Below the pieces are notes generated by a model. The model had not been told where the DNA came from and made no database searches. It worked only from the letters and a program-made list of their open reading frames with translations. From assembly GCA_001643675.2 (NCBI GenBank), contig LSRY02000014.1, positions 434,001 through 498,000 on the forward strand: a stretch of DNA of 64,000 bases, given 5' to 3'. Numbering within the stretch: the stretch's first letter is position 1; every line of letters begins with the position of its first letter. Source of the DNA: Monocercomonoides exilis PA203. Taxonomy: Eukaryota > Protista > Preaxostyla. Position numbers and translations under genes: made by a program. Positions 4,200-64,000 of this stretch are shown here, one piece after another.

Positions 4200-7100
4200 A
4201 TGGTAAGAAGCTTCACCAATGTGAAAATTTCATTCAATTTTATTTCATTGTTGTTGCTAGTTGTTTACAGCAGCAATGGCAGAGACATTGCAGAAAGGCA
4301 AATTCAACAAATATGTGATGAGGAGATACAAAAAGGAGTGTTCGGTGCTTCAAATGGAAATGAAAGGGGCAAAGGAAAATTTGGTATCGAAATGGTCAAT
4401 GCCAATTATGCACCTGGCAATTGTATCTGCTATATCCAAACAAGTCTAAATGTAATCAATGCCTCCTTGTGCGAAAGCTATCTCAATATCATCCCTCACA
4501 CTGGTTTCCCACTCCTCATTGCCCAACGCCACTCAGCTGCCTTTATCTTCTCCTCCACTTTCCAAGTCAACCCAGCAACAAAATTTCCACTTTTCTTCTC
4601 TGCCCATGCCTCCCTCGTCCTCACAAACCTCTCCCTCATCATCCACCAACCTGCCATCTTCTCCTTCTCCCTCTTCTCCACCCCAAATAATCTCCTCCCA
4701 GATGCCCACTCCCCAATCCCAGCCTCCTTCTCCATCTCTCACTCCTCCTTCTCCTCGTTCGTCTCACTCGCACAGCCTTTCCTTTTTTCTCCTTCTTCCC
4801 TCTCTTCCCCTTCCCCTCTCCACAACTATCATCAATTCCATCTCCACCACCAAATCCTCCTCAATCTCCATCTCTCAGATACACTCTTTTCCAACATCTC
4901 CTCACCCAAATACCATCCATCTCTTCCATCCCATCTCTTACACTCACAAAATCCATTCACTACTACCACAACTGCAACCACAAACGCCAACATCAAAATC
5001 AATACAATCCCCTCTTTATCTCTTCGCTCAGCCCTCTCCATCTACTCATCCGTCTTCATTCACACTCACAATCCCATCGATGGTGCCATCCTTCCAAACC
5101 TCAACAGCCCATTCACTTCTCTCTCTGCTTTCAACACCTCTTTCCTTCATCAAACACGCTCTTCTGAAAATGCTGCAGAGGTTCATATTGGAACTGAAAC
5201 TCAAAGAAAAGCACCTGGAAGATTGGATTTTTTTGATGCAAACAGCCATCGCTTTGAATGGTGTGAATGGGAAAATTCAAATAGTGGAGGTAGTAATGGT
5301 GGAGCGCTTTTGGTTTCTTGCAAAACTGCAAATCTATCAATAAGTTCTTGCTTATTTATAAATTGTTCAAATACTGATCATGGTGGAGCCGTATGTTGTG
5401 GAAGTTTGAAAGATGTTGGCATATTAAAATCAAATTTCACAAGTTGTTCAGCTGATCATGGAGGAGCTGTTTATGTTGGATATCCTGAACCACATTCTGT
5501 TTGGATATTCTCGGGTAACAGAGTTGAATATTGTTCAATTATAAATTGGTGTGGAACAGGTTGGTATTTTTTCATGGGAAGCTTTCCACAAAATGGTGAG
5601 TTTTTGTTTTCAAAATGCAAGTGCATTGCAAATACTGGCGGAGATTCAGCTGGAGCTGTGACTTTTCATAATCCTCCAGAAAGTGAACCAAGTCAGTTTT
5701 CAATAAAAGAGTGCCAGTTTATTGGCAATACATTGACTGCATCATCAATTTATGGTGGAGCTGGTATGTATTTTCATTTGTTAAATGAGTGGATAAATGG
5801 AACAAATATCATCATATTCTGTTTCTTCGATGGAAACTCTGCGACAAATGGAAGGGGGAATGATATATTTTTCAGCATTAGTAATATTACTCAATCCCCA
5901 TTCCAACAATGTGGTTCAACAACCGAAGTTAAAAGAGTCTGGAATCAGGGAACAGCTGATAACTCCGAATACAACAGCTGGCTTCCAATCATCAACCAGA
6001 ACAAAATCGTTGCAAATTTCGGAACTGATGCTGATGCTTGTGGCAAAACGCAGCAAAGCCCATGTGCCACTGTGGAGTATGCTCTCGGATGGATTGCTCC
6101 TTTCAGCGATGCCTCCCTCTCTCTTCTTGTCTCCACTTTCACTCCCACAGAGACTCTCACATTTCGTGCCCCAAATACAAAAATTACAGGAAATGGAATT
6201 GCTTCCACCATCATCGCCTCCAGTGGTATTCCCCAACCACAAAATTCACATTCACACTCATCACAATCATCACAATCAACATCATCATTTTCATTATTTT
6301 CATCTTCTTCTTCACCAGATCCATCTGCCTCTTCTGCCCTCTTCCAACAAATACAGGGCTCCCTCACAGTCTCTGCCCTCACCATCGCCCACAACTCCAC
6401 AAATCAAATCACCCCCATCCTCTTCCACCTCTCCGATAACTCCCCTTCCCTCAACCTAAACACAACCACCATCACAGGAACAACATCCATAACAATAAAA
6501 ACTCCCCTCTTCTTCCTCACTGCTGGCTCCCTCGCCCTCAACCACACATCAATCACCCAACTCGCCCTCAACAGCCAAAGCATCTTCCACCTCACCTCCC
6601 TCACAGCTCCCTTCACTCTCAACTCCTCCAGCATCACCGATATCACCTCCACTGCCTCCCCCGCCAGCTGTGTCCTCTCCTCTGCCACCTCCCCTGCCCT
6701 CTCCCTCTCCCTCGCCAACTGCACCATCACCAACATCAACTCAGCTCCACAACACCAACAAACTTCCACCAATGGCGGATGCATCTCATTCGCCTCATCT
6801 GCCTCTGCCAACACATTTTCTGTGAGCGACACAACCTTCTCCAGCTGCTCTGTGAGCGAGGATACAAGTTCTGGAGGAAGAGGCGGTGCTCTCATGATCG
6901 AGTTCAACCATGGCTCACAAGTGTCAGAATCCTCCTTTTCCATCACCAATATCGTGTTTTCAGCCAACAAGGCCAGTGTCGGAAGAGAAATGTATTTTGT
7001 GTGTAATTCACTTGTTGCTTCTGTGAAAGAGCCCTTGTTCGCCTTCATGGGAAACATCACTCAGAAAGATAACTCAATTGTTGGGCATGACAAAACAGAG

Positions 7101-10100
7101 GCTTTTGGAGATTGGAACGTTGACTTGTTCATATTTTTTGATGGATTCTTTGATGATACAATATATGTTGATGGAACATCTGGAGTGGAGAAGGAATATT
7201 GTGGGTTGGAGAAAGCGCCTTGTTTGAGTGTGAATTATGGAATGGAACATTTGAAGAAAACTCAGAACACAAAACAGGAGATTGTTGTGTGTGAAAAATC
7301 GAATATTGCTGGGTGTGTGGATGTTGGTGGAATGCATGTGAAAGCCAAGGCAGAGACAATTGTGGAGATAGAATGCCAAAGGGAAGTGAGTGGATCTGAA
7401 GCGTGTGTTCTTAAATCATTATCACTCACAGAATTGGAGTTCATTGGGATTGTTGTCCCCTCGAGCTTTAACAGAACAATCACATCAGTGATTGAATCGA
7501 GCACTCAAAATGGCGAGTTGCACATGAAGAACTGTGAGATGAGTGTTGTTGGAGGAAAGGAAAACACGATTGGATTATTCTTGATCAAATCGACAGGGAA
7601 GATAGTTGAACTGGACTCTGTCACGATTTCAGATGTGAAATCGTCAGTTTCGTTATTTTCATTTTCTCTTTCCTCAGCAAATATGAATGAACAGGAATAC
7701 AAAGTGAAGCTATTGAATTGCACAATGGAAGGATTTGTAATTGATAGCGGAGAAGCAGTTGAAGGAAAGGCAGCAGTTTTTGGAGGGAGTTTGGGAGTTG
7801 GAATGATGATAAATGGAAGTACAATTGACGGAGCATTGTCAAAGAAGAGCAAAGAAGGAGGAGCATTAAAAATTGAATTAAATGAAGGAGGATATGTGAC
7901 AATTCAAAAGAGCTCGTTTGTTGGATGCGTTTGTGAGAATGAGAACAACAGAGGAAAGGGGGGAGGGATATATATGGATTGTCAAAGCTGTTTGAATGAA
8001 AGGCCATTTCTTTTTGAAAGCGTCACTTTTGAGAGCAACAATGCAGCCTTTGGAAAGAATGTGTTCATTTTAGGAAAGGATTTTAATTCTTCTGTGACAA
8101 ATGAGTCATTCAAGTTTGATTATTCCTCAATGAAGGATGATAAAACTCTGTTTGTTGGGAATGATGATTTTCATCAAGAAAAGGATTTATTCATGTTCCT
8201 CATTCCATACAAATCATTTGAGATATTTATATCATCAGAAGGATTTGATGTTGCACGTTGCGGAAGTGAGGAAGAGCCATGCTTCACAATGTGGAAAGGG
8301 ATGGAAAACATGAAAGAGGGAGATGAAATGAAAACAATTCTGATTGAAGGATCAACAATTATTCAAGATTCATTCAATGTATCCAATTATCAGATCAAAA
8401 AGAGTGTGAAGATGGGAGAAGAAGATATAAAAGCGATATTGAATTTTGAAAAGGCAACTGATAGTCAGCTAGAATATTTCATGGAAAATGATATTCATCT
8501 TGAATTGTCCAACATCCAACTGCAACTGGCATCTGGATTTGACAATTCAGCCAAAACGATAATTTCCAACAAAAATAGAGAATTGGTGATAATTGGATGT
8601 TCATTCCATTCAGAAGCTGGAGCGAGCAATGGATTTGATTGTGTATTTGTGGATGTGATTGGAGGCAGTGTGGAAGTGAATGATTTGTCGATGGAATCAT
8701 CCAATTCTGGAAACAGCATTTTTGTCATTCACAATGCTGGAATTGTTTGTCATTTTGTGAATGTTCGAGTGGAATCGTTGAATGAGAGTGGAGGATGCAT
8801 ATTATCAATCAAGAAATCTGAATCAGGATTGAAGATAAATGAAGGAGGTGAAGACTGTGCAAATATCGAGATTGATAATTCATCATTTTCAGGAGTGAAG
8901 AGAAGTGGCAATGGAGCAAGCATTTTGGAATCAACAAGTGGGAAAAAGATTTGTTTGATTGTGAATGAGAGCAACATCACAGAAGACAAATCAGAAGATA
9001 GTGAAAAAGGAGGGGCAATATTCTTCACATTGTGTGTGTCTGGTTCGATGAAGATGATTGATTCAACAATCAGCCATTGTAGCTGCAGTGAAAGCACAGG
9101 AAAAGGAGGAGGGGTGTATTTGGCAACAAAGGAAAGAGGAGAATTGAATTTCACATTTGTGGTGATGAAGTTCAGTGACAACGGGGCAAGTGTTGGAAAA
9201 GATATTTTCATTGAATGCTTCAACATCACATCGCAGATCAATGAAAGCCAATTTCAGTTTGATCTTCGAGAAGGCCATTATTCACGAATAAATGCAATAT
9301 ATGGAAGAGATGAATGTGATTATCCAAGCGATACAGATCTGATTGGATTTGTAACTATTCATCAGAGTGATACAATTGTTGTGAGCAGTGTGGATGGATC
9401 GAATGAGAGGCAATGTGGAACAAACACACTTCCATGTTATTCAATTGATTATGGATTAATGCATCTGACTTCAGATTTCATAAGTCTGATGTTCATTGTT
9501 GAAGAAAGTGTGATTGGTGGAGAGATGAATCTGAAGGAAATGAGTCTGAGTTCGAAGAGCAGAGGCTTGTGTGAAGTTGAAGTGAAATCAAATATTGGAA
9601 AAACAAGAGAGACATTGATGGGAACAATCGGAACAGTCTCATTGGCGAGAGTGAATTTTGTGTTTGATTCGAATTTCATCTCTTCTCATGAATCACTGAT
9701 ATCACCAGAAGGAGGGATTCTTGAAATAATAAATTGCTCTTTTTCATCAAAACAATCTGCTGGAGAAGGAAATATAGAATTAGCATACATTCCACTTTAC
9801 ATCATCAATACGGCAGAGGGAGAATTACAACTTGATGGATGCACAATATCAAATCTCGTACTTCATGAAGCAGTTTTATATCTCTCGTCAGCTCTTCCAT
9901 CAACAATTGATTCATTAATGATTTGCAATTCAACAGTTTCTCATTCGCTTGTTGAAATTATTGAATGTGGACAATTAAATATGGAAAAGTTTCATTTAGA
10001 AAATATCACAGTTGAAGGAAATGAAGAATCATTGATATCTTGCTTGTCAATGAAAAAGACGATGCAATTGACAAATTGCACAATAGGCGATGTCAGCTCA

Positions 10101-12242
10101 AAGACTGTAAAAGGGAAATTGATGAAAGTGGAGAATAGTTTGGATGTAAAAATGGACAGCTGCATTTTCGATGGGAGTTCAAAAGAAATAAATGAAAAGA
10201 ATTTGAATGAAGGAAAAGAGATGTGCAGATGGGAAGGATCTCTTGTGGATGTTGTGAAGAGTTCTGTGATGATGAAAGATACAACTATTTCGAATTCACA
10301 TGATGGTGGACTTGCAATTAGTGGAGGAAATGTGATAATTGAGAAAGGAGAGTTCATTGACAACAATCCCTTGATATCAAATTATCCATCACTGAGAAGA
10401 AATATCGTCTGTTCAGATTCCGGAGTGATGAATGTGATGAGTTTGAAAGGAGGAGATGGATGGGAAAGAAACACATCATTGTGGGTTCTGGATGAAGGAT
10501 GCGAATTGGGTGGGATAGTTTCTGAGAGAGCATCATCATTCTTCATCCCAATTGTGGAAGAGGCGAGGAATGAGACGGCATCTGAAGGAAGAACAATCAT
10601 CACGCTGAGTGGGAGACTTCTTCTGCCATGTGATGTTTCGTTGAAGTTGAGCTTCAGGAATGGAAGGGAAGAGGTGGTTGAGAGCTATGGGATTGGAGAA
10701 AAGGAAAGTGTGTCAGAGAACGAAATTGTTGCAGTTGTTTCATCGGTTCAGATGGGAGCAGAGGGAGCAGAGACAGAAGTGAGTGCGAGTCTTCTGTTTG
10801 GAAAAGGTGATTCGCCTTCATCGACTGGTTCGTTTATCCTGAAGAACAGAAGCGAAACCGAAGGAAAAGGAGATGACAGAATTGTTGAAGAAGGGAAAGA
10901 AGGAAAATCATTTTGGCCAATAATTGTTGTTGTTATGGCAATAATCCTTTTAATTGTTCTCATTGTGTCAGTTGTTCTGGCCATTCGATGGAGAAAACAA
11001 AAGAGAAGGACAGAGGAACTTGAAGTGATTGTGGAAGACACAGTGAAGAAGGATCCAAAAGCATTTGAGATGGTGACGATGGAGATGTCACCAGAAGAGC
11101 AATGGCGAAGGGAAGAGAGGGAGACAGAGAAGAAGAATGAAGAGAGGATAAAGAAGAGAGTTTATGAGAAAAGCTTGGGACACTCCGAGTCATCAGAGCA
11201 TTTGCTGAGTGAGAGCGGCTCCACTGAATACATTTTGGGAAAGGATTCAGACAAGATTCCAGAATGGATGCTGGAGAAGGTGGATGAGAAAGAAGTTGAG
11301 GAAGAGACAAGGAAGCGAACACCATCACCTTCCATTTCATCCACTTCAACCACAGACACTTCAGACACAGAATCCACATTTGTTCGATCGGAGAGTCTGT
11401 GTCCAACCACTTCATCGATGTCGAATCTGGTGGATGCAATGGCCTGTTCATCGCCTCATGAGAAATTGATTGTGGATCTGAGAGATTCGCTGTTCATGCT
11501 GTTGCACGGAAGGAATGAGAAAAAAGAGATGGCAATTGGGAGTCTTCAGGAAAGAGAACAGACAGCTGCACAGATCCTATTCTGGGTGGCCAACCTTGCC
11601 CTCCATTCCTTTGACGAAATGGAGAATCCTCTCTCATCTCTCACCAATCTCAGTCCCCATATTGTTCTCTTCTCTGAGCACATGGTGATCTGCATTGTCA
11701 TGCACTCTGACTTCTCATCTTCAGACTCAGATTCATCATCGACCTCATCATCAACTGTTGTGACATCTGCAAGTGATGATGATGATGATGATGATAGAGA
11801 CTCTCTGCCTTCATCAGCTTTTGAGGATGAGGATGATTTCAGGAAGGAGTGCTTGAGGTGGAAGGCGCCAGAGCTGCTGGTGAACAGGAAAATGGGGGCG
11901 ACAAAGGAGTCGGTGGCATTTTCAATTGGGATGATGCTTTGGGAGTGTCTGACGCTGGAGATTCCGTTTGGAGAGTGTGGAGCAGAGGTGGTGGGGCAGA
12001 AGATTGTGAATGGGGAGAAGCCGGATGTGAGGAAGGTGGGCGGGAGCAGCTTGGCGGGTGTGGTGAAGGGGTGCCTGTCGCAAGACTGGGGGCAGCGGCC
12101 GAGTGTGAACGAGCTGAAGCGGGAGTTTATTGTGCGGTTTCCGAAAGGGGCAGCAATCATGACGATGACAGACGCGATCTGTGTTCGGGAAGAGTCCATG
12201 GCTGGGCTGAACAGAAGCATGATGAGCGAGTCGGAGGAGTGA
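4200..12242 (+). CDS. Giant intronless receptor-like protein, copy A (2680 aa): signal peptide, 4 Cys-capped beta-helix/Pmp-like modules, TM, tyrosine-kinase-like pseudokinase
   Basis: The N-terminus is hydrophobic (FNFISLLLLVVYS). It has repeated GGA(L/V/I)/GGG(I/V)Y and FxxNxAxxGxD motifs and four G-x-x-x-x-x-CG-x(4-5)-PC caps. The TM segment FWPIIVVVMAIILLIVLIVSVVLAI (~10911-10986) is followed by RWRKQKRR. The tail has CLRWKAPE and FSIGMMLWECLTLEIPFG (kinase subdomains VIII-IX) but no HRD. Confidence 0.9.
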   Translation: MVRSFTNVKISFNFISLLLLVVYSSNGRDIAERQIQQICDEEIQKGVFGASNGNERGKGKFGIEMVNANYAPGNCICYIQTSLNVINASLCESYLNIIPHTGFPLLIAQRHSAAFIFSSTFQVNPATKFPLFFSAHASLVLTNLSLIIHQPAIFSFSLFSTPNNLLPDAHSPIPASFSISHSSFSSFVSLAQPFLFSPSSLSSPSPLHNYHQFHLHHQILLNLHLSDTLFSNISSPKYHPSLPSHLLHSQNPFTTTTTATTNANIKINTIPSLSLRSALSIYSSVFIHTHNPIDGAILPNLNSPFTSLSAFNTSFLHQTRSSENAAEVHIGTETQRKAPGRLDFFDANSHRFEWCEWENSNSGGSNGGALLVSCKTANLSISSCLFINCSNTDHGGAVCCGSLKDVGILKSNFTSCSADHGGAVYVGYPEPHSVWIFSGNRVEYCSIINWCGTGWYFFMGSFPQNGEFLFSKCKCIANTGGDSAGAVTFHNPPESEPSQFSIKECQFIGNTLTASSIYGGAGMYFHLLNEWINGTNIIIFCFFDGNSATNGRGNDIFFSISNITQSPFQQCGSTTEVKRVWNQGTADNSEYNSWLPIINQNKIVANFGTDADACGKTQQSPCATVEYALGWIAPFSDASLSLLVSTFTPTETLTFRAPNTKITGNGIASTIIASSGIPQPQNSHSHSSQSSQSTSSFSLFSSSSSPDPSASSALFQQIQGSLTVSALTIAHNSTNQITPILFHLSDNSPSLNLNTTTITGTTSITIKTPLFFLTAGSLALNHTSITQLALNSQSIFHLTSLTAPFTLNSSSITDITSTASPASCVLSSATSPALSLSLANCTITNINSAPQHQQTSTNGGCISFASSASANTFSVSDTTFSSCSVSEDTSSGGRGGALMIEFNHGSQVSESSFSITNIVFSANKASVGREMYFVCNSLVASVKEPLFAFMGNITQKDNSIVGHDKTEAFGDWNVDLFIFFDGFFDDTIYVDGTSGVEKEYCGLEKAPCLSVNYGMEHLKKTQNTKQEIVVCEKSNIAGCVDVGGMHVKAKAETIVEIECQREVSGSEACVLKSLSLTELEFIGIVVPSSFNRTITSVIESSTQNGELHMKNCEMSVVGGKENTIGLFLIKSTGKIVELDSVTISDVKSSVSLFSFSLSSANMNEQEYKVKLLNCTMEGFVIDSGEAVEGKAAVFGGSLGVGMMINGSTIDGALSKKSKEGGALKIELNEGGYVTIQKSSFVGCVCENENNRGKGGGIYMDCQSCLNERPFLFESVTFESNNAAFGKNVFILGKDFNSSVTNESFKFDYSSMKDDKTLFVGNDDFHQEKDLFMFLIPYKSFEIFISSEGFDVARCGSEEEPCFTMWKGMENMKEGDEMKTILIEGSTIIQDSFNVSNYQIKKSVKMGEEDIKAILNFEKATDSQLEYFMENDIHLELSNIQLQLASGFDNSAKTIISNKNRELVIIGCSFHSEAGASNGFDCVFVDVIGGSVEVNDLSMESSNSGNSIFVIHNAGIVCHFVNVRVESLNESGGCILSIKKSESGLKINEGGEDCANIEIDNSSFSGVKRSGNGASILESTSGKKICLIVNESNITEDKSEDSEKGGAIFFTLCVSGSMKMIDSTISHCSCSESTGKGGGVYLATKERGELNFTFVVMKFSDNGASVGKDIFIECFNITSQINESQFQFDLREGHYSRINAIYGRDECDYPSDTDLIGFVTIHQSDTIVVSSVDGSNERQCGTNTLPCYSIDYGLMHLTSDFISLMFIVEESVIGGEMNLKEMSLSSKSRGLCEVEVKSNIGKTRETLMGTIGTVSLARVNFVFDSNFISSHESLISPEGGILEIINCSFSSKQSAGEGNIELAYIPLYIINTAEGELQLDGCTISNLVLHEAVLYLSSALPSTIDSLMICNSTVSHSLVEIIECGQLNMEKFHLENITVEGNEESLISCLSMKKTMQLTNCTIGDVSSKTVKGKLMKVENSLDVKMDSCIFDGSSKEINEKNLNEGKEMCRWEGSLVDVVKSSVMMKDTTISNSHDGGLAISGGNVIIEKGEFIDNNPLISNYPSLRRNIVCSDSGVMNVMSLKGGDGWERNTSLWVLDEGCELGGIVSERASSFFIPIVEEARNETASEGRTIITLSGRLLLPCDVSLKLSFRNGREEVVESYGIGEKESVSENEIVAVVSSVQMGAEGAETEVSASLLFGKGDSPSSTGSFILKNRSETEGKGDDRIVEEGKEGKSFWPIIVVVMAIILLIVLIVSVVLAIRWRKQKRRTEELEVIVEDTVKKDPKAFEMVTMEMSPEEQWRREERETEKKNEERIKKRVYEKSLGHSESSEHLLSESGSTEYILGKDSDKIPEWMLEKVDEKEVEEETRKRTPSPSISSTSTTDTSDTESTFVRSESLCPTTSSMSNLVDAMACSSPHEKLIVDLRDSLFMLLHGRNEKKEMAIGSLQEREQTAAQILFWVANLALHSFDEMENPLSSLTNLSPHIVLFSEHMVICIVMHSDFSSSDSDSSSTSSSTVVTSASDDDDDDDRDSLPSSAFEDEDDFRKECLRWKAPELLVNRKMGATKESVAFSIGMMLWECLTLEIPFGECGAEVVGQKIVNGEKPDVRKVGGSSLAGVVKGCLSQDWGQRPSVNELKREFIVRFPKGAAIMTMTDAICVREESMAGLNRSMMSESEE

Positions 12243-13033
12243 GAAGATGTGGATTGGAAGTTGGCAAGCAGGAGAGCAGAGGAGCAGAAGAGCAATGAAA
12301 ATGAGACAATGAAGGCAACGTGAGGTGTTCTTGCCATTCACAACAACATCCTCTCCAAAAATAAAGCATGTTTGTGCATTGGAGAAGAGGAATGCAAAAG
12401 GAGGATGATTGAAAGGGAAATGGCTGTTGGAGCAGAAGCCTTTGAGAGGAATGGGCATGGTGAAAGGAGGAGAGATGAAGTGATGCACCCCTTCAAAAAA
12501 AGAGTCAGAATGAAAAGACGAGCTGGATTTGTTTGAAAGAAGTGAGCCAACTTTGTGGAATGGAGTTGAGGAACGGGGCTGAGGAGAGTTTTATTTTTCT
12601 GTCAGATTTTCAACACAAATTATTTTATTGTTTTTTTATTTTTCGTTTTTGTTTGCTTTTCAATGTTTGTTGTGGAGCGGCATGATTTGCGAGTTGTGCT
12701 GCCTGTTTGAGTTCTGATGCGATGTGGATTTGAGACAATTAATCTTTGAATATTTCTTTCCACTTTCCTTCCACTTTTCTTCTTTCTCTTCTTTGTTGTT
12801 GTTGTTGTTGTTGTTGTTGTGTTTGAATGGAGTTTGTCACGAAGTGATTTGTGAACACAAATTGTCAATCATTGTTCGTTAAGGGATGCTTTTTCCTCAA
12901 CAAGTTTCACCTTGTCAGTTTTTGAATGCACATAGATTTTTCGATGGATCTCACAATCCACTTGGCTGATGAGAGTCAAAAAATATCCTATCCCATGTCA
13001 TTTAATCCATCATCGAAAACAAAAGAAAAATCG
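12243..13033 (+). repeat. ~790-bp non-coding 3' block shared, inverted, with copy B (27411-28197)
   Basis: The sequence after the copy A stop (gaagatgtggattggaagttggcaagca...catcgaaaacaaaagaaaa) matches the reverse complement of 27411-28197 at high identity. It contains a (TTG)n microsatellite at ~12793-12819 that is degenerate in the other copy. Confidence 0.9.
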
Positions 13034-13304
13034 GAGCTCATCAGTTTCTGGTTAACTGAAAAATATCGTATTTGTTTATGGAAATCAGTTCAAAACAAAT
13101 AAATTTGGCATTATAATCATGGAAAAGTTGTTGATAAAAAGTTCTGAAACATTTTGATGTAAGTTCGGGGAAATGCTGAGAATCAAAGATTCAATTTATC
13201 AAAAGTGGTTCAAGAAAAACGAACAGATACCAGAAATTTTTAACTTCATGAGTTTCTAATTGCTTTGATCTGCAATATATGAATTTTCTGAACATGCTTC
13301 AACA

Positions 13305-19059: not shown

Positions 19060-22000
19060 ATGGAAATTTATGGATGTGCGTATTTTGTTAATATTTTATA
19101 ATCCAGATTTTTGAGTAACATGTGTTGAAAATTTTTTTATCCCTTTAGACACAAATATCAAATTTTTATGTTCCACTGAAGAATGTGCTTTCTTTAAAGC
19201 TTTTACAAAAAAGAACCAGAAATTGCGGATTCTAAAGTATTATTCCATGGAAAATGCACTCTTTTTCCAAAATACCCTTGTTAGAAGGAAACTTTCCGAA
19301 GCCAAGCGAATAAGAAGCCCACGTATTTTGAAAATATATGATTCATTTTTTGTTAACGACGATGAATTGTACATTGCTATGGAATACTGCAACGGAGCTA
19401 GCCTTTACAATGATGTGAAACAGAGAAAAAAAGAAAAGCGTTTTTACACAAACGAGGTTGGAGCTTTGAAAGTCATTACAAATTTTCAATTTGGTGTTCA
19501 ATGACTTATTTTTGTAATTTCCCTTGCTTAGGAGCTTTGGATAATTATAACCGATCTCATACTTGCACTTTTTGAATATTTTAAGGTAGATTTAAAACAC
19601 CAAAACATAAATTTGAAGAATATAGTGATGATGCCTGACGGGCACGTTAAGCTAGGTGTGCAACCAGTAAATATTGACATCATTTTATCTGATTTTTCCT
19701 GTTATTTCATACACATTTTCTTTGATCAAACAATGAAAAAGGCGAATTTCAAATCAAGAAATCAATAACTAATTCAGATTTTGATTTTGGATCAACTCCG
19801 TGCTTTTATTCGAATAAGGCATCAGAAGAACTTTCTAATTTTTCATCTGCCTCTTCATCTTCAGAATCTTCCGTTTCATTGTTGGCTCATGAAACCGATC
19901 TTAGGCAGCTGGGAAAAGTCTTGTTTGAGCTGTGTTCATTGAATTCTTCATCACCACAAGAATTGGGCATATTTTCTGAAGAGATTACCGAAGCATCATT
20001 GGAGAAAGCATTCCCACCGTCTGTTGACAAAAACATCATCACAATTGTCAAAATGCTTCTTTCCTCTTCTTTAGGAGACTCAACAGATTTAGTTGATATT
20101 CTTGCTCTTCCTTGTGTGATGGATAGATTGGCAACAGGAAGAAAATTGGAAACAGAAGGATTTAATCGTGCTCAGGATTTTGCAGAAAAAAGCTCAAAAA
20201 GCGATGAAGAAAATGGAGAAACAACAGAGGGAAAAAATCAAAAAGAAGAAAAATGTGATGACCTCTTAAACGAAACACTTCGTGATGTTTGTGAAATTAA
20301 AAATGTTGTTGAGGTTCTGCTGATGCGGAAGAACAAAGCAGACAGAGAAGCATTCAAACTTCGACAGATCAACAACGAATTGCGTGAGAGACTTGCTGAG
20401 CAAGAAAGGTTGGAGAATAAACTGAAATATGCTTACGAAATGATTGAAGAGTATGAAGAGCTTTACGATTCCATCAGAGAAAGAAACAAAGAACTGGAAA
20501 TATTACTTGAAGAAAGCATGCTTAAAGGTTCTAATGGTTTGAGTGGCATGTTGAAATTAGCTCGCTCCAATGAAATGGGAATAGCATCAGCATCTGCTTC
20601 TTCTCTGCTTTCTGCCTCTGCAACAACCGCATCGCATTCACGGAACAAACAACTGCCCAATCAGGAAAAATCTCCAATGAATAATTCGAATGCTTCCGTT
20701 AAAGAGATGACAAATCAGCCAAAAAAGTCCAAGAAACAGCAAACTGGAGACTTGACATCTTCTCTCAAAAAATCAACAGAAAAATTGTCTCTTGCAGGTG
20801 ACGATGAATCATCTGCAAAACAGACAATAGAAAAGGCAAAAGAAAGTGAAAAGACAGAAGAAGCTAAAAGCAAAGACAATCAAATACAAACATCTTCAAC
20901 AAATCAATCAGAATCGAAATCAGCTACAATGACTGCAACTCAATCTTCATCTCCATCTTCAGCTTCTTCCTCGTCTTCAGCTTCTGCTCTGAATCAAACA
21001 GCTGAACAGATGTCAGCTGCATCCTATTCAATTTCAACTGACAAGAGCTTGTCTTCGAAATCTCTCAACAAAACAGAAAGCCAAAAGTTGAAAGAGAAGC
21101 CAAAAAAGGATTCAAAAAATGAAAAAACGCAAAAACAGACAGCAGCCAAACAGAAATCTGAAGAAACATCGACAGTTGAAGTTGAGTGGGCTTCATGTTC
21201 ATTCTTTGATAATTCTGCGATTCATCAACCTTCTTCTTGTTCTTCTGCCTCGTCTTCTGCTTCTTCTGCTTCTGCTTCTGCTTCTACATCGTCTTTGTCG
21301 TCGTCATCTTCTTCTTTTTCTTTATGGGAAGAGGAATTATCTTTTTCTTCTCCTTCTCTTTTTCTTTCTCCTCCTCTTTCTCCTCCACCTTCTCCTCCAC
21401 CTTCTTCTCCTCTTCCTCCTCTTCCTCCTCTTCCTCATTCTCCTCATTCTCCTCATTCTCCTCCTCATTCTTCTTCTTCTTCTTCATTTTCTTTTTCTTT
21501 TTCTTCTTCTTCTCCTCCTCTTCCTCCTTTTTCTTCCTCTTCATCATCAAAATCATCATCTATTTCTTTATGGGATAACTCATTAAGATTAGATGACGAT
21601 GAATGGCCTGCGCTTCCATCTTGCAACAATTCAACAAGCAAGCATTCACATTCACGGACTTCTTCTTCTTCTTCTTCTTCAAATGCTTCAACTACTAAAA
21701 CTTCAAAGCCAACAGTTGCAAATACAATTTCATCGTCCTCTCCACAGTTTGCTCCTTCATCTGCTTTAGTCAGAATGACTGCTCCTTCTCCTTTGTCACA
21801 TGTTCAGACTGACCAAAAAACAAACAAAAAATCAGACAATTCGCCAAAGACATTGAAGTCAACAGCAAAAGAGCCTAATGATTCAAATGGTTCAAAGGAA
21901 ACAAAGGAAACAAAGGAAACAAAGGAATTAAAAGAATCAGAAGATCCAAAAGCAGAAAAAGAACAAAAAGAACCAAAAGAACGAAAAGAACCAAAAGGAT

Positions 22001-40100: not shown

Positions 40101-40521
40101 AAACAAGCGACTGCCTTCCAGCATCAATAATTGAATGAACGCTGCTCTGATCAAAATGAATCTTCTGCGTTGTCAGTGAAGTGTTTGTCAAGCCCAATTG
40201 CGAAGATATCTGACTAGAAGTCAACTTTTGATGATGATTTCCTTTTGTTTTTCCAACCTCTTTTGCAAATGAAGATCCTTCAATCCCCCACTTATGTTTA
40301 ATGCTATTTGATAAAAAAGGCATCACATGACTTTGCTTTTCAAAGCAATCAATGTTTTCAGTCTTTATTGAATTTTGACCTTGACCGTCAGATTTTGGAC
40401 TTTCTGTTGAGCAGCTCATGAGAATAAAATAGAAAAGAACAATAATCATCGATAATTTCTTCTCACTCTGCCTCAGACAGCAGAAAATTCCTTCTCTCCA
40501 AACAATCAATATTTTCTGCAA
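28198..40521 (-). pseudogene. Giant receptor-like pseudokinase, copy B (~4100 codons, 8 ectodomain modules), interrupted by one in-frame TAA at 35866-35868
   Basis: ORFs 35866..40521 and 28198..35862 are in the same frame: ...gtg ggt gag gaa TAA ata ttg aag ata gtt... (VGEE*ILKIV). It has the same module motifs, TM (FWPIIVVVMAIILLIVLIGFILFVV) and pseudokinase tail as copy A. The true start is probably near the hydrophobic IIVLFYFILMSC segment (~40450). The stop could be a real nonsense allele or a base-call error. Confidence 0.8.
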
Positions 40522-55653: not shown

Positions 55654-56029
55654 ATGTCACTTATTTTTTGCAATTTCTGCATTTTTATCTATTTGTCTTT
55701 TTATCTTTTTATCTTTTTATCTTTTTTTTTTGTATTTTTAAATTTTTATATTTATATTTATATTTTTTATTTTTATTTTATTTTATTTTTGTGTGTGTGC
55801 GTGTGTGTTAACAATTCTTGAAAATGTTCATTTTTTTGTGAAAAATTTTATTAATTTCTAAACAAAAATTACACCTACGAAAACATGAGGTTTTTTCCTC
55901 TTGATTGCAAAAATTATTGTTTTGTTTTGAAAAATTATCATTTTGAATAACTTTTGGTGCAAAAATTGAAATGAAAAAATGGAAACATTAAAATAAACAA
56001 AAAATCACAAAATCTCAATGTGTAATAGA

Positions 56030-56124
56030 CAAAGCAAAGCAAAGAAAATCAAAGAAAAGAAAAGCAAAGCAAAGGAAAAACAAAAAACAAAAAAACAAAA
56101 AAACAAAAAACAAAAAACAAAAAA
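56030..56124 (+). repeat. A-rich simple repeats (AAAGC)n then (CAAAAAA)n
   Basis: Tandem units are directly visible. (TTTTAT)-like and (GT)n tracts also occur at ~55680-55808. Confidence 0.8.
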
Positions 56125-56851
56125 CTCTGATTATTAATTGTATTATAAAAGCTGAAAAAGCTGAATTAAGGGCTGAAAGACATTCAGAACTTTTAAACAG
56201 TCGACTAATAAAAACAAAAACGTGTCAATAAAAATAAATGCTTCATTTAATATCAAATATACATACAAAAATGATAAAAGTTTTTAGCACGTCACATGGA
56301 AGAAAAAATAAATCATAATGTAAATACATACAAAAAGAAAGCGTTTTTGCACAAAATGCAAACAAAGTCTCAACAATATAATCACATTCAATTAACAATA
56401 CAAAACCACGAAATATATATGTATAAAGCTTCTTTTAAACAATAAACATAAATTTTAATTTTAATCTCAAACTTATTAATAAAAATATTAAAGCAACTTC
56501 TTTTAATATTGAAAACATAGAAATGATCTTTTGATCTAAATAAGAAATAAACATTACAACAAAATAAGTCTCTGTAAAAATTGATGGGTATCTTCCATTG
56601 ACAAATATTAAACCAATTCAAATTTCAAGAAATGCTGTTTTTGCAATTTCTTGTATCTGATTATCAAAAATAATTCTTGCGCTGCTGTCTATTACATTAC
56701 CTTTGTTGCAAACTCCATTTTTAGGATCTCCACCAAATATGGTTGAATTTAACTCTTGCAATAGAATGTCTTTGTGAAGTAATTTTCGAATAGCATCATC
56801 AATTTTGAAATCAGAATACTCCAATAATCAAACATTCTCTCTCTTTTTTTT

Positions 56852-59800
56852 TCACATCCTTTCATTTTGGCTGTTCATTTCGCTGCAGCTTTCTTTTTGT
56901 TTCGCACTTCTTTCTAAATTGATAATTGCATCTGATATTGTTATTACAAGCTTGCTAACTGGTGATAGCCCAACAAGTGCTTTCATCACCTCACAAAGCG
57001 TTGGTCTTTTCGATGACTCCGCTGATAGACATGCATCTTCAACATTCCTCACTCTGCTTTCATCAATCCCCTTCTCACCCAATCTTTCCCCATTAACAAT
57101 CTTCTGCCCCGCCACCTCTGCTCCATACTCTCCAAACGGAATCTCCAGCGTCAGACACTCCCACACCATCATCCCAATCGAAAATGCCACCGACTCCTTT
57201 GTTGCTCCCATGTTTTTGTTCACCAGCAGCTCTGGCGCCTTCCACCTCAAGCACTCTTTTCTGTTGTCATCCTCATCCTCAAAGGCTGATGAAGGAGGTG
57301 GTGATTTTGTGAATCTCTCGCTCTTCACAGAAACATCAGAGGAAGATGTGATCATGGTGGAGGTTGAAGAGATGGAGGAAGTGTCAGAGTCTGAGGAGCA
57401 GTCGGAGTGGAGGGCAATGCAGATCACCATGTGCTCGGAAAATAACACAATGTGTGGGCTGAGATTGGCAAGAGAAGAAAGAGGATTCTCCATTTTATCA
57501 AAGGAGTGGAGAGCGAGATTTGCCACCCAGAACAGGATCTGAGCAGCTGTCTGCTCCCTCTCCCGCAGAGTCCCAATTGCCATCTCCTTTGTCTTATTCC
57601 TCCCGTGAAGCAACATGAACAATGAATCCCTCAGGTCCACAATCAGCTTTTCATGAGGAGAAGAACAGGCCATCGCATCCACCAGATTCGACATGGATGA
57701 GGTTGTTGGGCACAGATCCTCCCCTCGAACAAATGTTGAATCTGAATCAGTTGTTGAAGTGGTTGAAGTGGATGAAATGGAAGGTGATGGCGTTCGCTTC
57801 CTTGTCTCTTCCTCAACTTCTTTCTCATCCACCTTCTCCAGCATCCACTCTGGAATCTTGTCTGAATCTCTTCCCAAGATGTATTCAGTGGAGCCACTCT
57901 CGCTCAGCAAATGCTCTGATGACTCTGAGTGTCCCAAACTTTTTTCATACACTCTCTTCTTGATCCTTTCTTCATTCTTCTTCTCTGCCTCTCTCTCTGC
58001 TCTCCTCCATTGCTCTTCTGGAGACATCTCCATCGTCACCATCTCAAATGCTTTTGGATCCTTCTTCACTGTGTCTTCCACAATCACTTCAAGTTCCTCT
58101 GTCCTTCTCTTTTGTTTTCTCCATCGAACAATGAATATGATGGATACAATTAACAGTATTACTACAATCACAATGCATACAATTAATGCCCATGAGAATT
58201 TTCCTTCTTTCCCACTTTCAGCAATTCTGCCATCTCTTTTTCCTTCGGTTTCGCTTCTGTTCTTCAGGATAAACGAACCAGTCGATGAAGGCGAATCACC
58301 TTTTCCAAACAGAAGACTCGCACTCACTTCTGTCTCTGCTTCCACTCCTCCCATCTGTGCCGATGAAACAACTGCAACAATTTCGTTCTCTGACTCACTT
58401 TCCTTTTCTCCAATCCCATAGCTCTCAACCACCTCTTCCCTTCCATTCCTGAAGCTCAACTTCAACCAAACATCACATGGCAGAAGAAGTCTCCCACTCA
58501 GCGTGATGATTGTCCTTCCCTCAGATGCCGTCTCATTCCTCGCCTCTTCCAAAACTGGGATGAATAGTGGTGATGCTCTCTCCTCAATCATCCCTCCCAA
58601 TTCACATCCTTCATTCAGAATCCACAATGATGAATTTGGCAAAACTCCATCTCCTCCTTTCAAACTCATCACATTCAACACACCAGAATCTGAACAGAGA
58701 ATGTTTCTTCTGATTGAAGGATATTTTTCAATGAATGGATTATTGTCAATGAACTCTCCTTTCTCAATTATCACATTTCCTCCACTAATTGCAAGTCCAC
58801 CATCATGTGAATTCGAGATTGTTGTATCTTTCATCATCACAGAACTCTCCTTCACATCAACAACTGATCCATTCCATTTGCACACATCCACTTCCTCATT
58901 CAAATTCTTCTCATTTCTTTCCTTTGTACTCCCATCAAAAATGCAATTGTCCATTGAAACATCCAAACAATCCTCCAATTTCATCAATTTCCCTTTTGAG
59001 ATTTTTGAACTAACTCCGCCCATTGTGCAATTTGTCAACTGAATTGTCTTTTTCATAGACAAACAAGATATCAGTGAATCTTCAATTCCTTCAACTGTGA
59101 TATTTTCTGTATTTAATCTGTCCAAATTTAATTGTCCACATTCAATAATTTCAACAAGCGAATGAGAAACTGTTGAATTGCAAATCATTAATGAATCAAT
59201 TGTTGATGGAAGAGCTGACGAGAGATATAAAACTGCTTCATGAAGTACGAGATTTGATATTGTGCATCCATCAAGTTGTAATTCTCCTTCTGCCGTATTA
59301 ATAATGTGAAATGGAATGTTTGCATTTTCATTTCCTTTTTCATTAGATTGTTTTGAACCGAATGAACAATTCGTCATTTCAAAAATACCTCCTTCAGGTG
59401 ATATCAATGATTCATGTTGAGAGATGAAATTTGAATTAAACACAAAATTCACCCTCACCAATGAGACTGTATTTGTGGTAATGATTAATGCCTCTCTTGT
59501 TTTTCCAATGCTTGCTTTCACTTCAACTTTGCACATCTCCCTGCTCTTCGAACTCAAACTCATCTCCTCCAGATTCATCTCTTCACATATCACACTCTCT
59601 TCAACAACGAATATCAGACTCAGAATATCTGAGGTTAGATGCATCAGTCCATGCTCAATCGAATTACATGGAAGTGTGTTTGTTCCACATTGTCTGTCAT
59701 TCGATCCATCAACACTGCTCACAACAATCGTGTCACTCTGATGGATCGTTATGAAATTGATCAAGTTTGTGTCTCCAGTGTGCTCAGTCACATCTATTCC

Positions 59801-62800
59801 ATATATCGCATTCAGCTGAACATAATACTTCTCTCTCAGATCGAAATGAAATTGCGTTTCATTGATCTGGCTCGTGATGTTGTAGCACTCAACAAAAATA
59901 TCATTCCCCACACCTGCTATGTTTGCACCCCAATTCATCTTCTCAAACACAAAATTCAACCTTCCTGTTTCCTTTGTTGTCAAAAACACCCCTCCTCCTC
60001 TTCCTGTGCTTTCACTGCAGCTGCATTTTCTGACTTCGGAATAAATCATCTTCATTGATCCAGATGCACACAATGTGAATAATATAGCTCCTCCTTTTTC
60101 ACTCAATTCTGCCTTGTCTTCTGTTATGCTGCTCTCATTCACAACCAAACAAATCTTATTCTCACTTTTTGATTCCAAAATGCTTGGTCCATTGTCGCTT
60201 TTCTTCACACCTGAAAATGATGAATTATCAATCTCGATATTTGTTCCTTCTTTTCTTCCTTCATTTATCTTTGTTGCTAATTCAGGTCCTTTGATCAGAA
60301 GAAGACATCCTCCACTTTCATTCAACGATTCCACTCGAACATTCACAAAATGGCAAGTTATTCCAGAATCATGAATGACAAAAATACTGTTTCCAACATT
60401 GCATGATTCAAACGACAAATCGCTCGCTTCCACACTTCCTCCAATCACATCCACAAATGCACAATCAAATCCATTATTTATTCCTGCTTCTGAATGGAAT
60501 GAACATCCAGTTATTATCAACTCACCTTTTCTGTTTGAAATAATCATATTTACCGAGTTGTCAAAACCATATGTCAGTTGAAGTTGGATATTTATCAATT
60601 CAAGATGAATATCATTTCCCATGAAATATTCCAGCTGACTATCAGTTGCCTTTTCAAAATTCAATATCGCTTTTATATCTTCTTCTCCCATCTTCACACT
60701 CTTTTTGATCTGATAATTGGATACATTGAATGAATCTTGAATAATTGTTGATCCTTCAATCTGAATTGTTTTTCTTCCAATTTCCTTTTTCATGTTTTTC
60801 ATCCCTTTCCACATCGTTTTACACGGTTCTTCTTCACTTCCACATCTTGCAACATCAAATCCACTCGATGAGATAAATATCTCAATTGAGCTAAATGGAA
60901 TGAGGAATATGAATAAATCCTTTTCTTGATGAAAATCATCATTCCCAACAAACAGAGTTTTATCATCCTTCATTGAGGAATAATCAAACTTGAATGACTC
61001 ATTTGTCACAGAAGAATTAAAATCCTTTCCTAAAATGAACACATTCTTTCCAAAGGCTGCATTGTTGCTCTCAAAAGTGACGCTTTCAAAAAGAAATGGC
61101 CTTTCATTCAAACAGCTTTGACAATCCATATATATCCCTCCCCCCTTTCCTCCCTCACTTCTATTCTCTCAAACACATCCAGGAAATGAGCTCTTTTGAA
61201 TTGTCACATATCCTCTTTCATCCAATTCAATTTTTAATGCTCCTCCTTCTTTGCTCTTCTTTGAAATCGCCCCTTCTATCTTGCTATCATTTAACACCAT
61301 CCAAACTCCCAAACTCCCTCCAAACACTTCCGCCTTTCCTTCGACTGCTGATCCTCCATCAATCTCCAATCCTTCCATTGTGCAATTCAACAGCTTCACT
61401 TTGGATTCCTGTTCATTCAAATTTGTTGACGAAAGTGAAAATGAAAATAACGAAACTGACGATTTCACATCTGAAATCGTGACAGAGTCCAGTTCAACTA
61501 TCTTCCCTGTCGATTTGATCAAGAATAATCCAATCGTGTTTTCCTTTCCTCCAACAACACTCATCTCACAGTTCTTCATGTGCAACTCGCCATTTTGAGT
61601 GCTCGATTCAATCACTGATGTGATTGTTCTGTTAAAGCTCGAGGGGACAACAATCCCAATGAACTTCATTTCTGTAAGTGATGCTGATTTCAGAACACAT
61701 TCTTCTTCAGAGCCATTCAATTCACTTTTGCATTCAATGCTTACAACTTTTTCCTCTTTTGATTTCACACTCACCCCGCTCATATCCACACACCCAACGA
61801 CAGACGAGTTAGTGTATAAAATAATCTCTTGTTTTGTGTTCTGTGTTTTCTTCAAATGTTCCATTCCATAATTCACGCTCAAACAAGGCGCCTTTTCCAA
61901 GCCACAATACACCTCTTCGACTCCAGATATTCCATCCACATAAATTGTATCCGCGAAATATCCATCGAGAAATATAAATAAATCGACATTCCAGTTCCCA
62001 AATGCCTCTGTTCTGTCATGTCCAACAATCGAGTTGTCTTTCTGAGCGATGTTTCTCATGAAGGCGAACAAGGGCTCTTTCACAGAAGCGACAAATGATT
62101 CACACACAAAATACATATCTCTTCCGACACTGGCCTTGTTGGCTGAAAACACGATATTGGTGATGGAAAAGGTTGTGGATGACACTTCTGAATCATCCTT
62201 GAACTCGATCATAAGTGCCCCGCCTCTTCCTCCAGAACTTGTATCCTCGCTCACAGAGCAGGTGGAGAAATTTGTGTCACTCACTGAAAAGGAGTTTGCA
62301 GGGGCAGATGATGCGAATGAGATGCATCCGCCATCTGTTGCAGTCTGTTGGCTCAACTGTTCTGAGTTGATACTGGTGATGGTGCAGTTGGTGAGGGAGA
62401 TGGAGAGGGCAGGGGAGGTGGCAGAGGAGAGGACACAGCTGGTGGGGGTGGCTGTGGATGTGATGTGAGTGATGTTGGAGGAGTTGAGAGTGAGAGGTGC
62501 TGTGAGGGAGGAGAGGTGGAAGATGCTTTGGCTGTTGAGGGCGAGACTGGTGATTGCTGTGTGGTTGAGGGCGAGGGAGCCAGCAGTGAGGAAGAAGAGG
62601 GGGGTTGTGATTGATGATGAAGATGAGGTTGTTCCAGTGATGGTGGTTGTGTTGAGGTTGAGGGAAGGGGAGTTTTCGGAGAGGTGGAAGAGGATGGGGG
62701 TGATTTGATTTGAGGAGTTGTGGGCGATGGCGAGGGCAGAGACTGTGAGGGAGCCCTGGGTCTGTTGGAAGAGGGTAGACGAGGCAGATGGATCTGGTGA

Positions 62801-64000
62801 AGAAGAAGAAGATGAATATGACGAATTTGATGATGTTGATTGTAATGAGTGTGAATGTGAATTTTGTGGTTGGGGAATACCACTGGAGGCAATGGTGATG
62901 GCAGTTGAACAGTTTCCTGTGATTTTTGTATCAACAGCGTTGAAGGTGAGTGTTTGAATGGGAGTGAAAGTGGAGCTGAGAAGGGTAATGAAAGCCTCTT
63001 GAACAACATTTAAACCTTCGAGAGCATACTCGATGGTGGCACATGGGATCTGTTGTGGTCTTCCACAGGCATCTGCGTCTGTTCCACTGTTGGAAACTAT
63101 TATTCTCGAAGGAATAAGAGGAATCCAACAGTTGACAGTCTCGTTATCAGCCGCATTATTATTCCACACTCTTTTTGTCGGAGTTGTTGATCCACATTGT
63201 TGGAATGGAGATTGAGTTATGTTGCTTCCATTGAAGAACATATTATTCCCTTTTCCACTAGAAGCGAAGTTACAGTCGAAGAAACAGAATATGATGATAT
63301 TTGTTCCATTTATCCACTCATTTAACAAATGGAAATACATACCAGCTCCACCATAAATTGATGATGCAGTCAATGTATTGCCAATAAACTGGCACTCTTT
63401 TATTGAAAACTGACTTGGTTCACTTTCTGGAGGATTATGAAAAGTCACAGCTCCAGCTGAATCTCCGCCAGTATTTGCAATGCACTTGCATTTTGAAAAC
63501 AAAAACTCACCATTTTGTGGAAAGCTTCCCATGAAAAAATACCAACCTGTTCCACACCAATTTATAATTTAACAATATTCAACTCTGTTACCCGAGAATA
63601 TCCAAACAGAATGTGGTTCAGGATATCCAACATAAACAGCTCCTCCATGATCAGCTGAACAACTTGTGAAATTTGATATTAATATACAAACATCTTTCAA
63701 ACTTCCACAACATACGGCTCCACCATGATCAGTATTTGAACAATTTATAAATAAGCAAGAACTTATTGATAGATTTGCAGTTTTGCAAGAAACCAAAAGC
63801 GCTCCACCATTACTACCTCCACTATTTGAATTTTCCCATTCACACCATTCAAAGCGATGGCTGTTTGCATCAAAAAAATCCAATCTTCCAGGTGCTTTTC
63901 TTTGAGTTTCAGTTCCAATATGAACCTCTGCAGCATTTTCAGAAGAGCGTGTTTGATGAAGGAAAGAGGTGTTGAAAGCAGAGAGAGAAGTGAATGGGCT
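56852..64000 (-). pseudogene. Giant receptor-like pseudokinase, copy C (5' end outside window), with two in-frame point stops (TAA 63569-63571, TGA 61169-61171)
   Basis: ORFs 63569..63883, 61169..63532 and 56852..61129 are all in one frame (gaps of 36 and 39 nt) and colinear with copy A. The stops align to Ser TCA and Cys TGT codons of copy A. The TM (FSWALIVCIVIVVILLIVSIIFIV) and the last ~65 aa differ from those of copies A and B. Confidence 0.85.

Follow-up and report, generated by a model that had tools for sequence, protein, structure and literature searches.

Contig 8 of the genome assembly of the oxymonad Monocercomonoides exilis PA203 (82.3 Mb in 101 contigs) carries, at positions 434001-498000, a 64 kb stretch of DNA, the whole of which was analysed and is hereafter called the window, with three paralogous genes for giant, receptor-like membrane proteins. 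Specifically, the three copies fill 27.5 kb, or 43%, of the window, and their coordinates, confirmed from the reading frames, agree with those given in a preliminary description of the same DNA. The copies, and the in-frame stop codons that interrupt two of them, are as follows (positions are those of the window):

Copy A (public model MONOS_4213), 4200-12242, + strand: intact frame of 2,680 codons, no intron
Copy B (public model MONOS_4210), 28198-40521, - strand: 4,107 codons, with about nine modules, stalk, membrane span and tail; first ATG at 40449
Copy C, 56852-64000, - strand, continuing beyond the end of the window: mosaic relative of copy A
In-frame TAA of copy B, 35866-35868, - strand: inside a module; Gln in the closest paralogue, P0004
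In-frame TAA of copy C, 63569-63571, - strand: copy A reads Ser
In-frame TGA of copy C, 61169-61171, - strand: copy A reads Cys

The three copies, as likewise noted in the preliminary description, are without introns in the sense that their frames are continuous; RNA-library contigs placed on positions 6301-12300, which lie largely in copy A, showed no canonical splice joint. As paralogues have sense codons at the positions concerned, and as the match to the module profile runs unbroken over the stop of copy B, we read the interruptions in copies B and C, from their sequence, as point nonsense changes and not as gene ends. Unless the stops are assembly errors, copies B and C are young pseudogenes. 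A variant genetic code was considered as a source of the in-frame stops and ruled out, given the mixture of TAA and TGA, the sense codons in the paralogues, and the stop-free frames of copy A and of most other loci. The public protein models depart from the frames described here: P0001, the model of copy A (2,269 aa), is without the N-terminal 411 residues, and P0005, the model of copy B, jumps the stop as well as part of the membrane-span region.

Proteins of this family are named in the databases mostly as 'uncharacterized protein' or as 'putative protein tyrosine and serine/threonine kinase'. The family is very probably the same as one already published: according to two reports, the 'protein tyrosine kinases' are the largest gene family of M. 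exilis, with 332 predicted members of which 320 belong to the tyrosine kinase-like (TKL) group, and these genes are spread over all chromosomes and overlap 'unclassified repeats' identified by RepeatModeler (Karnkowska et al., 2019, PMC6759080; Treitli et al., 2021, PMC8767320). The earlier suspicion that the family might already be annotated as hypothetical or kinase-like was thus well founded. In the text that was available, these reports do not describe the ectodomain, the membrane topology, the lost catalytic motifs, or the selection pattern, and no paper combining oxymonad and pseudokinase was found in the literature searched.

Ectodomain and Topology

Each protein consists of a putative signal peptide, four to nine tandem modules of approximately 350-400 aa, a conserved stalk, a single membrane span, and a 400-aa tail, a layout that supports the giant type-I membrane protein proposed in the preliminary description. 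Signal peptides and membrane spans were read from the sequence and its translation. The corresponding features of the window are:

4200-4280, + strand: signal-peptide-like N-terminus of copy A (aa 1-27), read from the translation, with the hydrophobic run ISFNFISLLLLVVYSS
4281-5996, + strand: divergent N-terminal region of copy A, with weak module-profile matches at aa 182-438 (independent E-value 1.5e-5) and aa 470-565 (3e-4)
5997-10172, + strand: modules of copy A, three full (aa 600-993, 986-1347 and 1341-1731) and a truncated fourth (aa 1728-1991)
10269-10907, + strand: conserved membrane-proximal stalk of copy A, about 210 residues (aa 2024-2236)
10908-10985, + strand: transmembrane span of copy A (aa 2237-2262), followed by RWRKQKRR (positive inside)
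29452-29529, - strand: transmembrane span of copy B
58127-58198, - strand: transmembrane span of copy C

Full-length paralogues have N-termini similar to the signal-peptide-like start of copy A. Putative signal peptide, ectodomain, single membrane span, and cytoplasmic kinase-type domain are found together in the arrangement of a receptor-like (pseudo)kinase. Fitting an outside-inside topology, N-glycosylation sequons are enriched in the ectodomains (1.59 per 100 aa, versus 1.11 after shuffling) while the tails show no enrichment.

The modules were identified by iterative search from one segment of copy A, followed by a profile of 112 segments. A CG...PC cap opens every module, and a GGG turn closes it together with an FxxN.A.G.D.F motif, one of each per module, in keeping with the glycine-rich and FxxN repeats that had been noticed at the outset. 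Column identity across the 112 modules averages 18%, with conservation confined to columns of Cys and Gly, on which ground an enzymatic role (lyase or hydrolase) is considered unlikely.

Despite this divergence, the fold is predicted with confidence. The model of the copy A module at aa 1336-1736 (P0001:925-1325), predicted with the alignment of these segments, has a predicted local distance difference test score (pLDDT) of 93.3 and a predicted template modelling score of 0.91. An exhaustive structural aligner places approximately 290-300 of its residues, at 3.4-3.7 Å root-mean-square deviation (rmsd) and Z scores of 20-22.7, on solved structures of polygalacturonase, PL6 alginate lyases, the AlgE4 epimerase, and phage tailspikes, and in the ESM Atlas the model reaches a template modelling score of 0.70 to DUF1565/Beta_helix surface proteins. 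In a Foldseek search of the PDB, all placeable rows among the 50 matches listed are beta-helix proteins, with E-values of 2e-3 or weaker. The module is therefore confidently modelled as a right-handed parallel beta-helix of the pectin-lyase-like kind, a fold defined by three sheets coiled over some ten or more turns, as the preliminary description had supposed. Membership in the Pmp adhesins, whose repeats that description had named, is not supported: Pfam Chlam_PMP matches neither the whole proteins nor any of the 112 modules, and in place of the C-terminal autotransporter beta-barrel of a Pmp there is a helical membrane span with a cytoplasmic tail. Since, in addition, Pfam Beta_helix matches only 5 of the 112 modules, and these weakly, the likeness to Pmps lies solely at the level of fold and motif. 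The conserved stalk gave no match in the ESM Atlas.

The Cytoplasmic Tail

The tails of the three copies lie at the following positions:

10986-12242, + strand: cytoplasmic tail of copy A, comprising a helical juxtamembrane part, a Ser/Thr-rich disordered linker, a C-lobe remnant and a variable last ~90 aa
11403, 11856 and 11841-12125, + strand: landmarks of the copy A tail, namely the start of the PTTSS motif, RWKAPE and the Pfam match, respectively
28198-29451, - strand: tail of copy B
56852-58126, - strand: tail of copy C, with the last ~90 aa differing from those of copy A

Several comparisons, together with motif counts made on 106 annotated tails, relate this region to one half of a protein kinase. 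Firstly, Pfam PF07714 (PK_Tyr_Ser-Thr) matches the tail with 31.4 bits, against a curated cut-off of 23.1, over positions 164-257 of a profile 258 positions long. Secondly, a profile of the 106 tails compared with the PDB recovers C-lobes only, those of BTK, ZAK, TAK1, and ILK (E about 1e-6), with matches that begin near profile position 160. Thirdly, Foldseek superimposes about 100 residues, at 2.1-3.0 Å rmsd, on the C-lobes of the insulin receptor kinase (IRK), RIPK1, and BRAF, the C-lobe of BTK being aligned as well. The AlphaFold model of the tail is confident in only two stretches, taken from the alignment to be helix alpha-E and the region between APE and alpha-I; at residues 60-160, where an N-lobe would be expected, pLDDT is approximately 30.

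The motif counts follow the same division. RWxAPE, singled out in the preliminary description, occurs in all 106 tails, in accordance with the matched C-lobe stretch from APE through helices alpha-F to alpha-I. The N-lobe marks of a tyrosine kinase or TKL catalytic domain, GxGxxG and a VAIK-like motif, occur in 0 of 106, as does HRD, the catalytic-loop position being taken instead by LS[PS]H in 105 tails (LSPH in copy A). DFG is found nowhere at its proper place, and the only DFG-like triplets, in 5 tails, lie at unrelated C-terminal sites; in 87 of the 106, M[HR]S[DE] (HSD in copy A) is followed by an acidic, Ser-rich insert that replaces DFG and the activation loop. In our reading, the helical juxtamembrane part of the tail leads into a conserved disordered linker rich in Ser, Thr, and Tyr, which is followed by a C-lobe without an N-lobe. 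Judged by these sequences and models, the tail cannot phosphorylate and would be a dead kinase remnant. The pseudokinase of the preliminary description thus survives as a non-catalytic, kinase-like tail; its full two lobes do not, since only the C-lobe is matched and the N-lobe is replaced by the disordered Ser/Thr-rich stretch.

The proposition that these proteins are active receptor tyrosine or TKL kinases, which their publication as protein tyrosine kinases implies (PMC6759080), can point to a Pfam score well above the cut-off. It is scarcely credible, however, given that this match is confined to the C-lobe, that no N-lobe is predicted, and that the tails are without GxGxxG, VAIK-like, and HRD motifs and with DFG-like triplets only in the wrong place.

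The extreme C-terminus behaves differently from the remainder of the tail. The last ~90 residues are the sole variable part among the 106 tails, and the last ~90 codons of copy C (56852-57120), compared with 11976-12242 of copy A, form a different C-terminal cassette with 37% identity to both copies A and B.

Family Size and Genomic Distribution

The tail of copy A matched 102 scored loci of the genome, every one of them with at least 77% identity and E < 1e-198. A 27-nt degenerate pattern for FWVANLALH, a peptide specific to the family, allowing at most one mismatch, gave 283 + 294 = 577 matches in the genome and none with the reversed control. The figure of 577 is a lower bound on the number of tails, because 5 of the 106 annotated tails are without even the looser FWV.N form; it compares with the 332 genes published for the 'protein tyrosine kinase' family (PMC6759080, PMC8767320). 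The protein database contains 528 matches at E ≤ 0.001, the best 120 of which are all from M. exilis. Taken together, these counts bear out the anticipated presence of many copies genome-wide. Among the 102 sampled loci, 81 (79%) have open frames of at least 2,000 aa and 18 have frames below 1,500 aa, with size peaks at approximately 2,600, 3,050, and 4,100-4,200 aa. If the average open frame is taken as about 2,560 codons, 577 copies would, by estimate, account for some 4.4 Mb, or about 5% of the genome.

Many members of the family are paired with an inverted copy in convergent (tail-to-tail) orientation; the distance within a pair is 3-9 kb in most cases and 12 and 27 kb in two. Such pairs, identical in motif DNA and tail score, were seen on contigs C6, C7, C8, C9, C22, C26, C36, C47, and C50 (for example C6:727495+/731745-, C7:602890+/610080-, and C36:537941+/542523-). 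Either recent palindromic duplication or an error of assembly accounts for them.

Genuine kinase domains are encoded elsewhere in the genome. Complete or near-complete domains located in frames of 4,100-6,900 codons (C52:244016-244684, C23:935922-936590, C47:332771-333481, C28:950606-951055, and C67:94142-94609) are, on their sequence, candidate giant active kinases.

Selection and Diversification

Conservation differs sharply between the two ends of the protein. Between copies A and B, protein identity is 22-50% in the ectodomain but rises to 85-95% in the last ~600 residues. For the tail core (355 codons, 30 loci), the rates of non-synonymous (dN) and synonymous (dS) substitution are 0.07 and 0.96, respectively. 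The ratio of the proportions of non-synonymous (pN) and synonymous (pS) differences, taken in sliding windows of 40 codons over 27 loci, is distributed along the gene as follows:

Ectodomain: pN/pS 0.72-0.91
Stalk: pN/pS 0.31-0.66
Membrane-span region: pN/pS 0.36-0.44
Tail core: pN/pS 0.04-0.18 (pS 0.41-0.60)
Last ~90 residues: pN/pS 0.5-0.86

Full-length gene DNA entered these analyses from the three copies of the window, and the 30 tail loci extend approximately 500 codons into the ectodomain; ectodomains of the wider family were analysed from public protein models, not all of them correctly predicted.

Divergence along the gene is thus strongly non-uniform, as had been proposed. The constancy of the tail is the result of purifying selection. 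Gene conversion was considered as the source of tail identity and ruled out by synonymous sites close to saturation, with a tail dS of 0.96 and a pS of 0.41-0.60 in the tail core, and the values for the tails of contig 8, which have pS of 0.24-0.43 among themselves, compared with 0.55 to tails elsewhere. Copies A and B illustrate the point, with tails that are 93% identical in protein at a pS of 0.40. A tail pS of 0 was observed only in two inverted pairs, those of the sampled loci L020/L022 and L028/L029. The parts of the tail for which disorder is predicted are as conserved as the remainder of its core, which suggests linear motifs or modification sites within them.

The same figures bear on the possibility that the family is non-functional repeat DNA, the decaying copies of an amplified segment that RepeatModeler lists among 'unclassified repeats'. 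The stops in copies B and C and the short frames at 18 of 102 loci would suit such an origin, as would the reported overlap of the family with unclassified repeats (PMC8767320). Decay is nevertheless contradicted by a tail dN/dS of 0.07 at a dS of 0.96 and by the low pN/pS of the tail core in every 40-codon window, while 79% of sampled loci retain frames of 2,000-4,200 codons and the non-coding flanks are unalignable even for the close pair of copies A and C; this explanation is accordingly very improbable.

Ectodomains, on the other hand, diversify by modules. The ectodomain DNA of copy A has dozens of relatives at 75-86% identity, and its blocks at query positions 600-3782 and 3745-6201 are found separately, in different loci, which indicates exchange at a module border. 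The modular ectodomains of the preliminary description are upheld in that the number of modules varies and blocks are recombined at module borders. Copies A and C are mosaics in which tracts of 100% identity lie beside tracts of 63-78%, with pS per window ranging from 0 to 0.47, a conversion-like pattern; outside the coding region their flanks cannot be aligned. For this pair pN/pS is approximately 0.39 in the ectodomain and 0.20 in the tail core, and exceeds 1 in no window. The contrast that had been expected between ectodomain and tail is consequently confirmed in so far as the tail is far more constrained, and is not confirmed as diversifying selection.

Many of these features recall a variant surface coat, in which one or a few copies would be expressed and switched for antigenic or phase variation, as with the variant-specific surface proteins (VSPs) of Giardia, and in which the tail would serve only sorting or anchoring. 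A system of this kind would account for a family of hundreds that includes pseudogenes, for conversion-like mosaics, for the constancy of the membrane-proximal and tail parts, and for their presence in a host-associated organism. A tail of 400 aa that includes a conserved folded domain under such strong constraint, however, far exceeds the needs of a sorting signal. Moreover, ectodomain subfamilies with dozens of members at ~80% DNA identity suit a standing repertoire equally well. Variation of a coat is for these reasons regarded as unlikely.

Module shuffling bears equally on the idea of a structural surface layer or glycocalyx scaffold, composed of protective or adhesive rods whose tails are tied to the cortical cytoskeleton and which do no sensing. 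Tandem beta-helices are rod-like, the gene dosage is high, and the tail is non-catalytic, all of which such a layer would accommodate. Yet hundreds of divergent, module-shuffled ectodomains are not needed for a pure coat, and the conserved Ser/Thr/Tyr-rich linker has a regulatory look, so that a solely structural role appears distinctly improbable.

Evidence from RNA Libraries

In four RNA libraries, all from one study, 29-34% of sampled words of the 3' part of copy A are present. RNA contigs with at least 97% identity match 29-30 of 30 bins over positions 6301-12300, including error-free pieces of ectodomain specific to this copy, and one contig begins within the tail of copy A and extends past the stop codon, out of the stretch compared. 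The contigs are compatible with transcription of an intronless copy A and are not proof of it. RNA evidence, which the preliminary description had named as a check, thus supplied matching contigs for copy A but stopped short of establishing transcription, genomic DNA being possible in the libraries. At 9583-9657, 73 bases are missing from contigs of three of the four libraries. The ends of this gap are non-canonical (GA..AT) and its shorter side has only 21 bases, so that it most likely reflects an artefact of paralogues or repeats rather than an intron.

Relatives outside Monocercomonoides

A homologue search among 1.84 billion cluster representatives returned 97 clusters at E < 1e-30, of which the 49 that recur among the protein-database matches bear M. 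exilis names. Next in rank are two divergent M. exilis genes (54% and 38% identity), followed by proteins of Blattamonas nauphoetae and metagenome fragments; further matches are ordinary kinases of other eukaryotes. The Blattamonas protein BLNAU_5222 (1,326 aa) has an ectodomain matched by Pfam Beta_helix and a membrane span, and its kinase match covers the C-lobe only. Aligned to the tail of copy A, this and the other Blattamonas proteins display the PTTSS..VD..C block, LS.H in place of HRD, a low-complexity insert, and RWxAPE. The shared layout and degenerate tail features indicate that this architecture is older than the split of the two oxymonad genera, while its expansion with a near-frozen tail is specific to Monocercomonoides.

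Neighboring Genes

Two further loci of the window stand apart from the receptor-like genes. On the + strand, 19879-26028 is an unbroken frame of 2,049 codons with 26% Ser, 13% Lys, long poly-Ser runs, and a coiled-coil-like start; it is without a Pfam match and is unrelated to the receptor family. No intron is obvious in it, which weakens the earlier statement that all other complete genes of the window carry introns. On the - strand, 41660-44394 encodes an AAA ATPase whose C-terminal domain is of the Vps4 type, the Pfam matches (AAA at 2.8e-27, AAA_lid_3, and Vps4_C) lying in the frame 41660-42385. Directly upstream, in another reading frame, is a 670-codon frame without a Pfam match, and both frames probably belong to a single gene that is divided by an intron or a frame change.

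Interpretation

In our judgment the three copies probably belong to a very large family, specific to oxymonads, whose giant surface proteins cross the membrane once and join diverse beta-helix ectodomains to a constant dead-kinase tail that acts as a docking platform. Under this interpretation, the ectodomains would bind diverse ligands, for which bacterial glycans or those of gut mucus are the likeliest candidates, given that beta-helices of this type usually bind polysaccharides and that the organism lives among bacteria and mucus. The tail, as a fixed platform probably phosphorylated by genuine kinases of the same genome, would link these ligands to one common intracellular machinery for uptake or phagocytosis, trafficking, or the cytoskeleton. 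Growth of the repertoire may proceed by local and inverted duplication, and its diversification by gain and loss of modules, exchange of blocks at module borders, and patchy gene conversion, a turnover that would leave behind pseudogenes such as copies B and C.

Several observations weigh against this interpretation. Two of the three copies in the window are broken. The model of the whole tail is poor, with a mean pLDDT of 51.7. The ectodomain pN/pS of distant paralogues is unreliable owing to poor alignments and a pS near saturation, and the value of 0.39 for the ectodomains of copies A and C is relaxed constraint, positive selection for diversity not being demonstrated. The case for transcription is weak, consisting of short contigs from four libraries of a single study in which carry-over of genomic DNA was uncontrolled. 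Finally, surface location, ligand, phosphorylation, signaling, and partners are entirely inferred.

A more specific version of the dead-kinase receptor family can be offered only tentatively, and is itself doubtful: the family may constitute a repertoire resembling innate recognition, in which more than 500 tailspike-like beta-helix receptors for different bacterial polysaccharides, diversified through module shuffling and gene conversion, feed one uptake or signaling pathway through a phosphorylatable docking hub derived from a C-lobe without an N-lobe.

On the present analysis, the largest family of the best-known mitochondrion-less eukaryote, published as "tyrosine kinases," consists not of enzymes but of giant surface proteins. 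This corrects the published annotation, changes the count of the M. exilis kinome, and explains much of the "unclassified repeat" fraction. It also suggests that a gut commensal which feeds on bacteria has an extensive system of receptors or adhesins. Two of its properties are unusual: a kinase C-lobe without an N-lobe that is held under very strong selection in hundreds of paralogues, and eukaryotic receptors in which beta-helix domains of prokaryotic style are strung together. Were the ligands to prove bacterial glycans, the family would offer a tractable model for prey discrimination by a phagotrophic protist.

Comparison with Known Systems

The transmembrane kinases of Entamoeba histolytica (EhTMK) comprise some 90 members with Cys-rich CXXC-repeat ectodomains of a few hundred residues and two-lobed kinase domains. 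The M. exilis proteins differ from them in their beta-helix arrays of 2,000-3,700 aa, their C-lobe remnant, and their number of at least 577 copies. Both families are nonetheless large, and in both a receptor-like protein that crosses the membrane once carries a kinase-like tail and an ectodomain that varies between members. According to the EhTMK literature, E. histolytica is likewise an anaerobic, bacteria-eating gut protist whose family includes truncated copies and selectively expressed members, one of which, PATMK, takes part in phagocytosis (PMC2211552, PMC2880585). The EhTMK family is the closest functional analogue.

Three other systems share single aspects of the M. exilis family. The receptor-like kinases (RLKs) of the plant RLK/Pelle group, which is related to TKL, have undergone lineage-specific expansion to hundreds of members with diverse ectodomains, and dead members serve as scaffolds or co-receptors. 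Plant pseudokinase RLKs retain the bilobal fold, and most members of the RLK family are active, whereas every M. exilis member examined is dead and without an N-lobe, and the ectodomain fold differs. The KIND domain of Spir, PTPN13, and very-KIND is a kinase C-lobe without an N-lobe that functions as a protein-binding module in cytosolic animal proteins. Of known concepts it is the nearest to the M. exilis tail, which is instead part of a receptor; the resemblance appears to be one of function rather than of membership, and KIND was not listed in the Pfam scan at E ≤ 1, in which HMMER filters drop weak matches. Lastly, Giardia VSPs are encoded by hundreds of genes that recombine with one another, and combine a variable, CXXC-rich ectodomain with a membrane span and tail that stay constant, but their tail is five residues long (CRGKA), unlike the 400 residues with a folded domain of the M. 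exilis proteins.

With respect to the ectodomain, the modules share with right-handed beta-helix surface proteins (DUF1565/Beta_helix proteins, phage tailspikes, autotransporter passengers, and Pmps) the fold, an N-terminal cap, GG-rich turns, and the FxxN motif. They differ from these known proteins in being nearly without a sequence match to them, without an autotransporter barrel, and without conserved catalytic residues. Whereas the DUF1565/Beta_helix surface proteins occur in archaea and bacteria, the modules of M. exilis are part of a eukaryotic type-I membrane protein.

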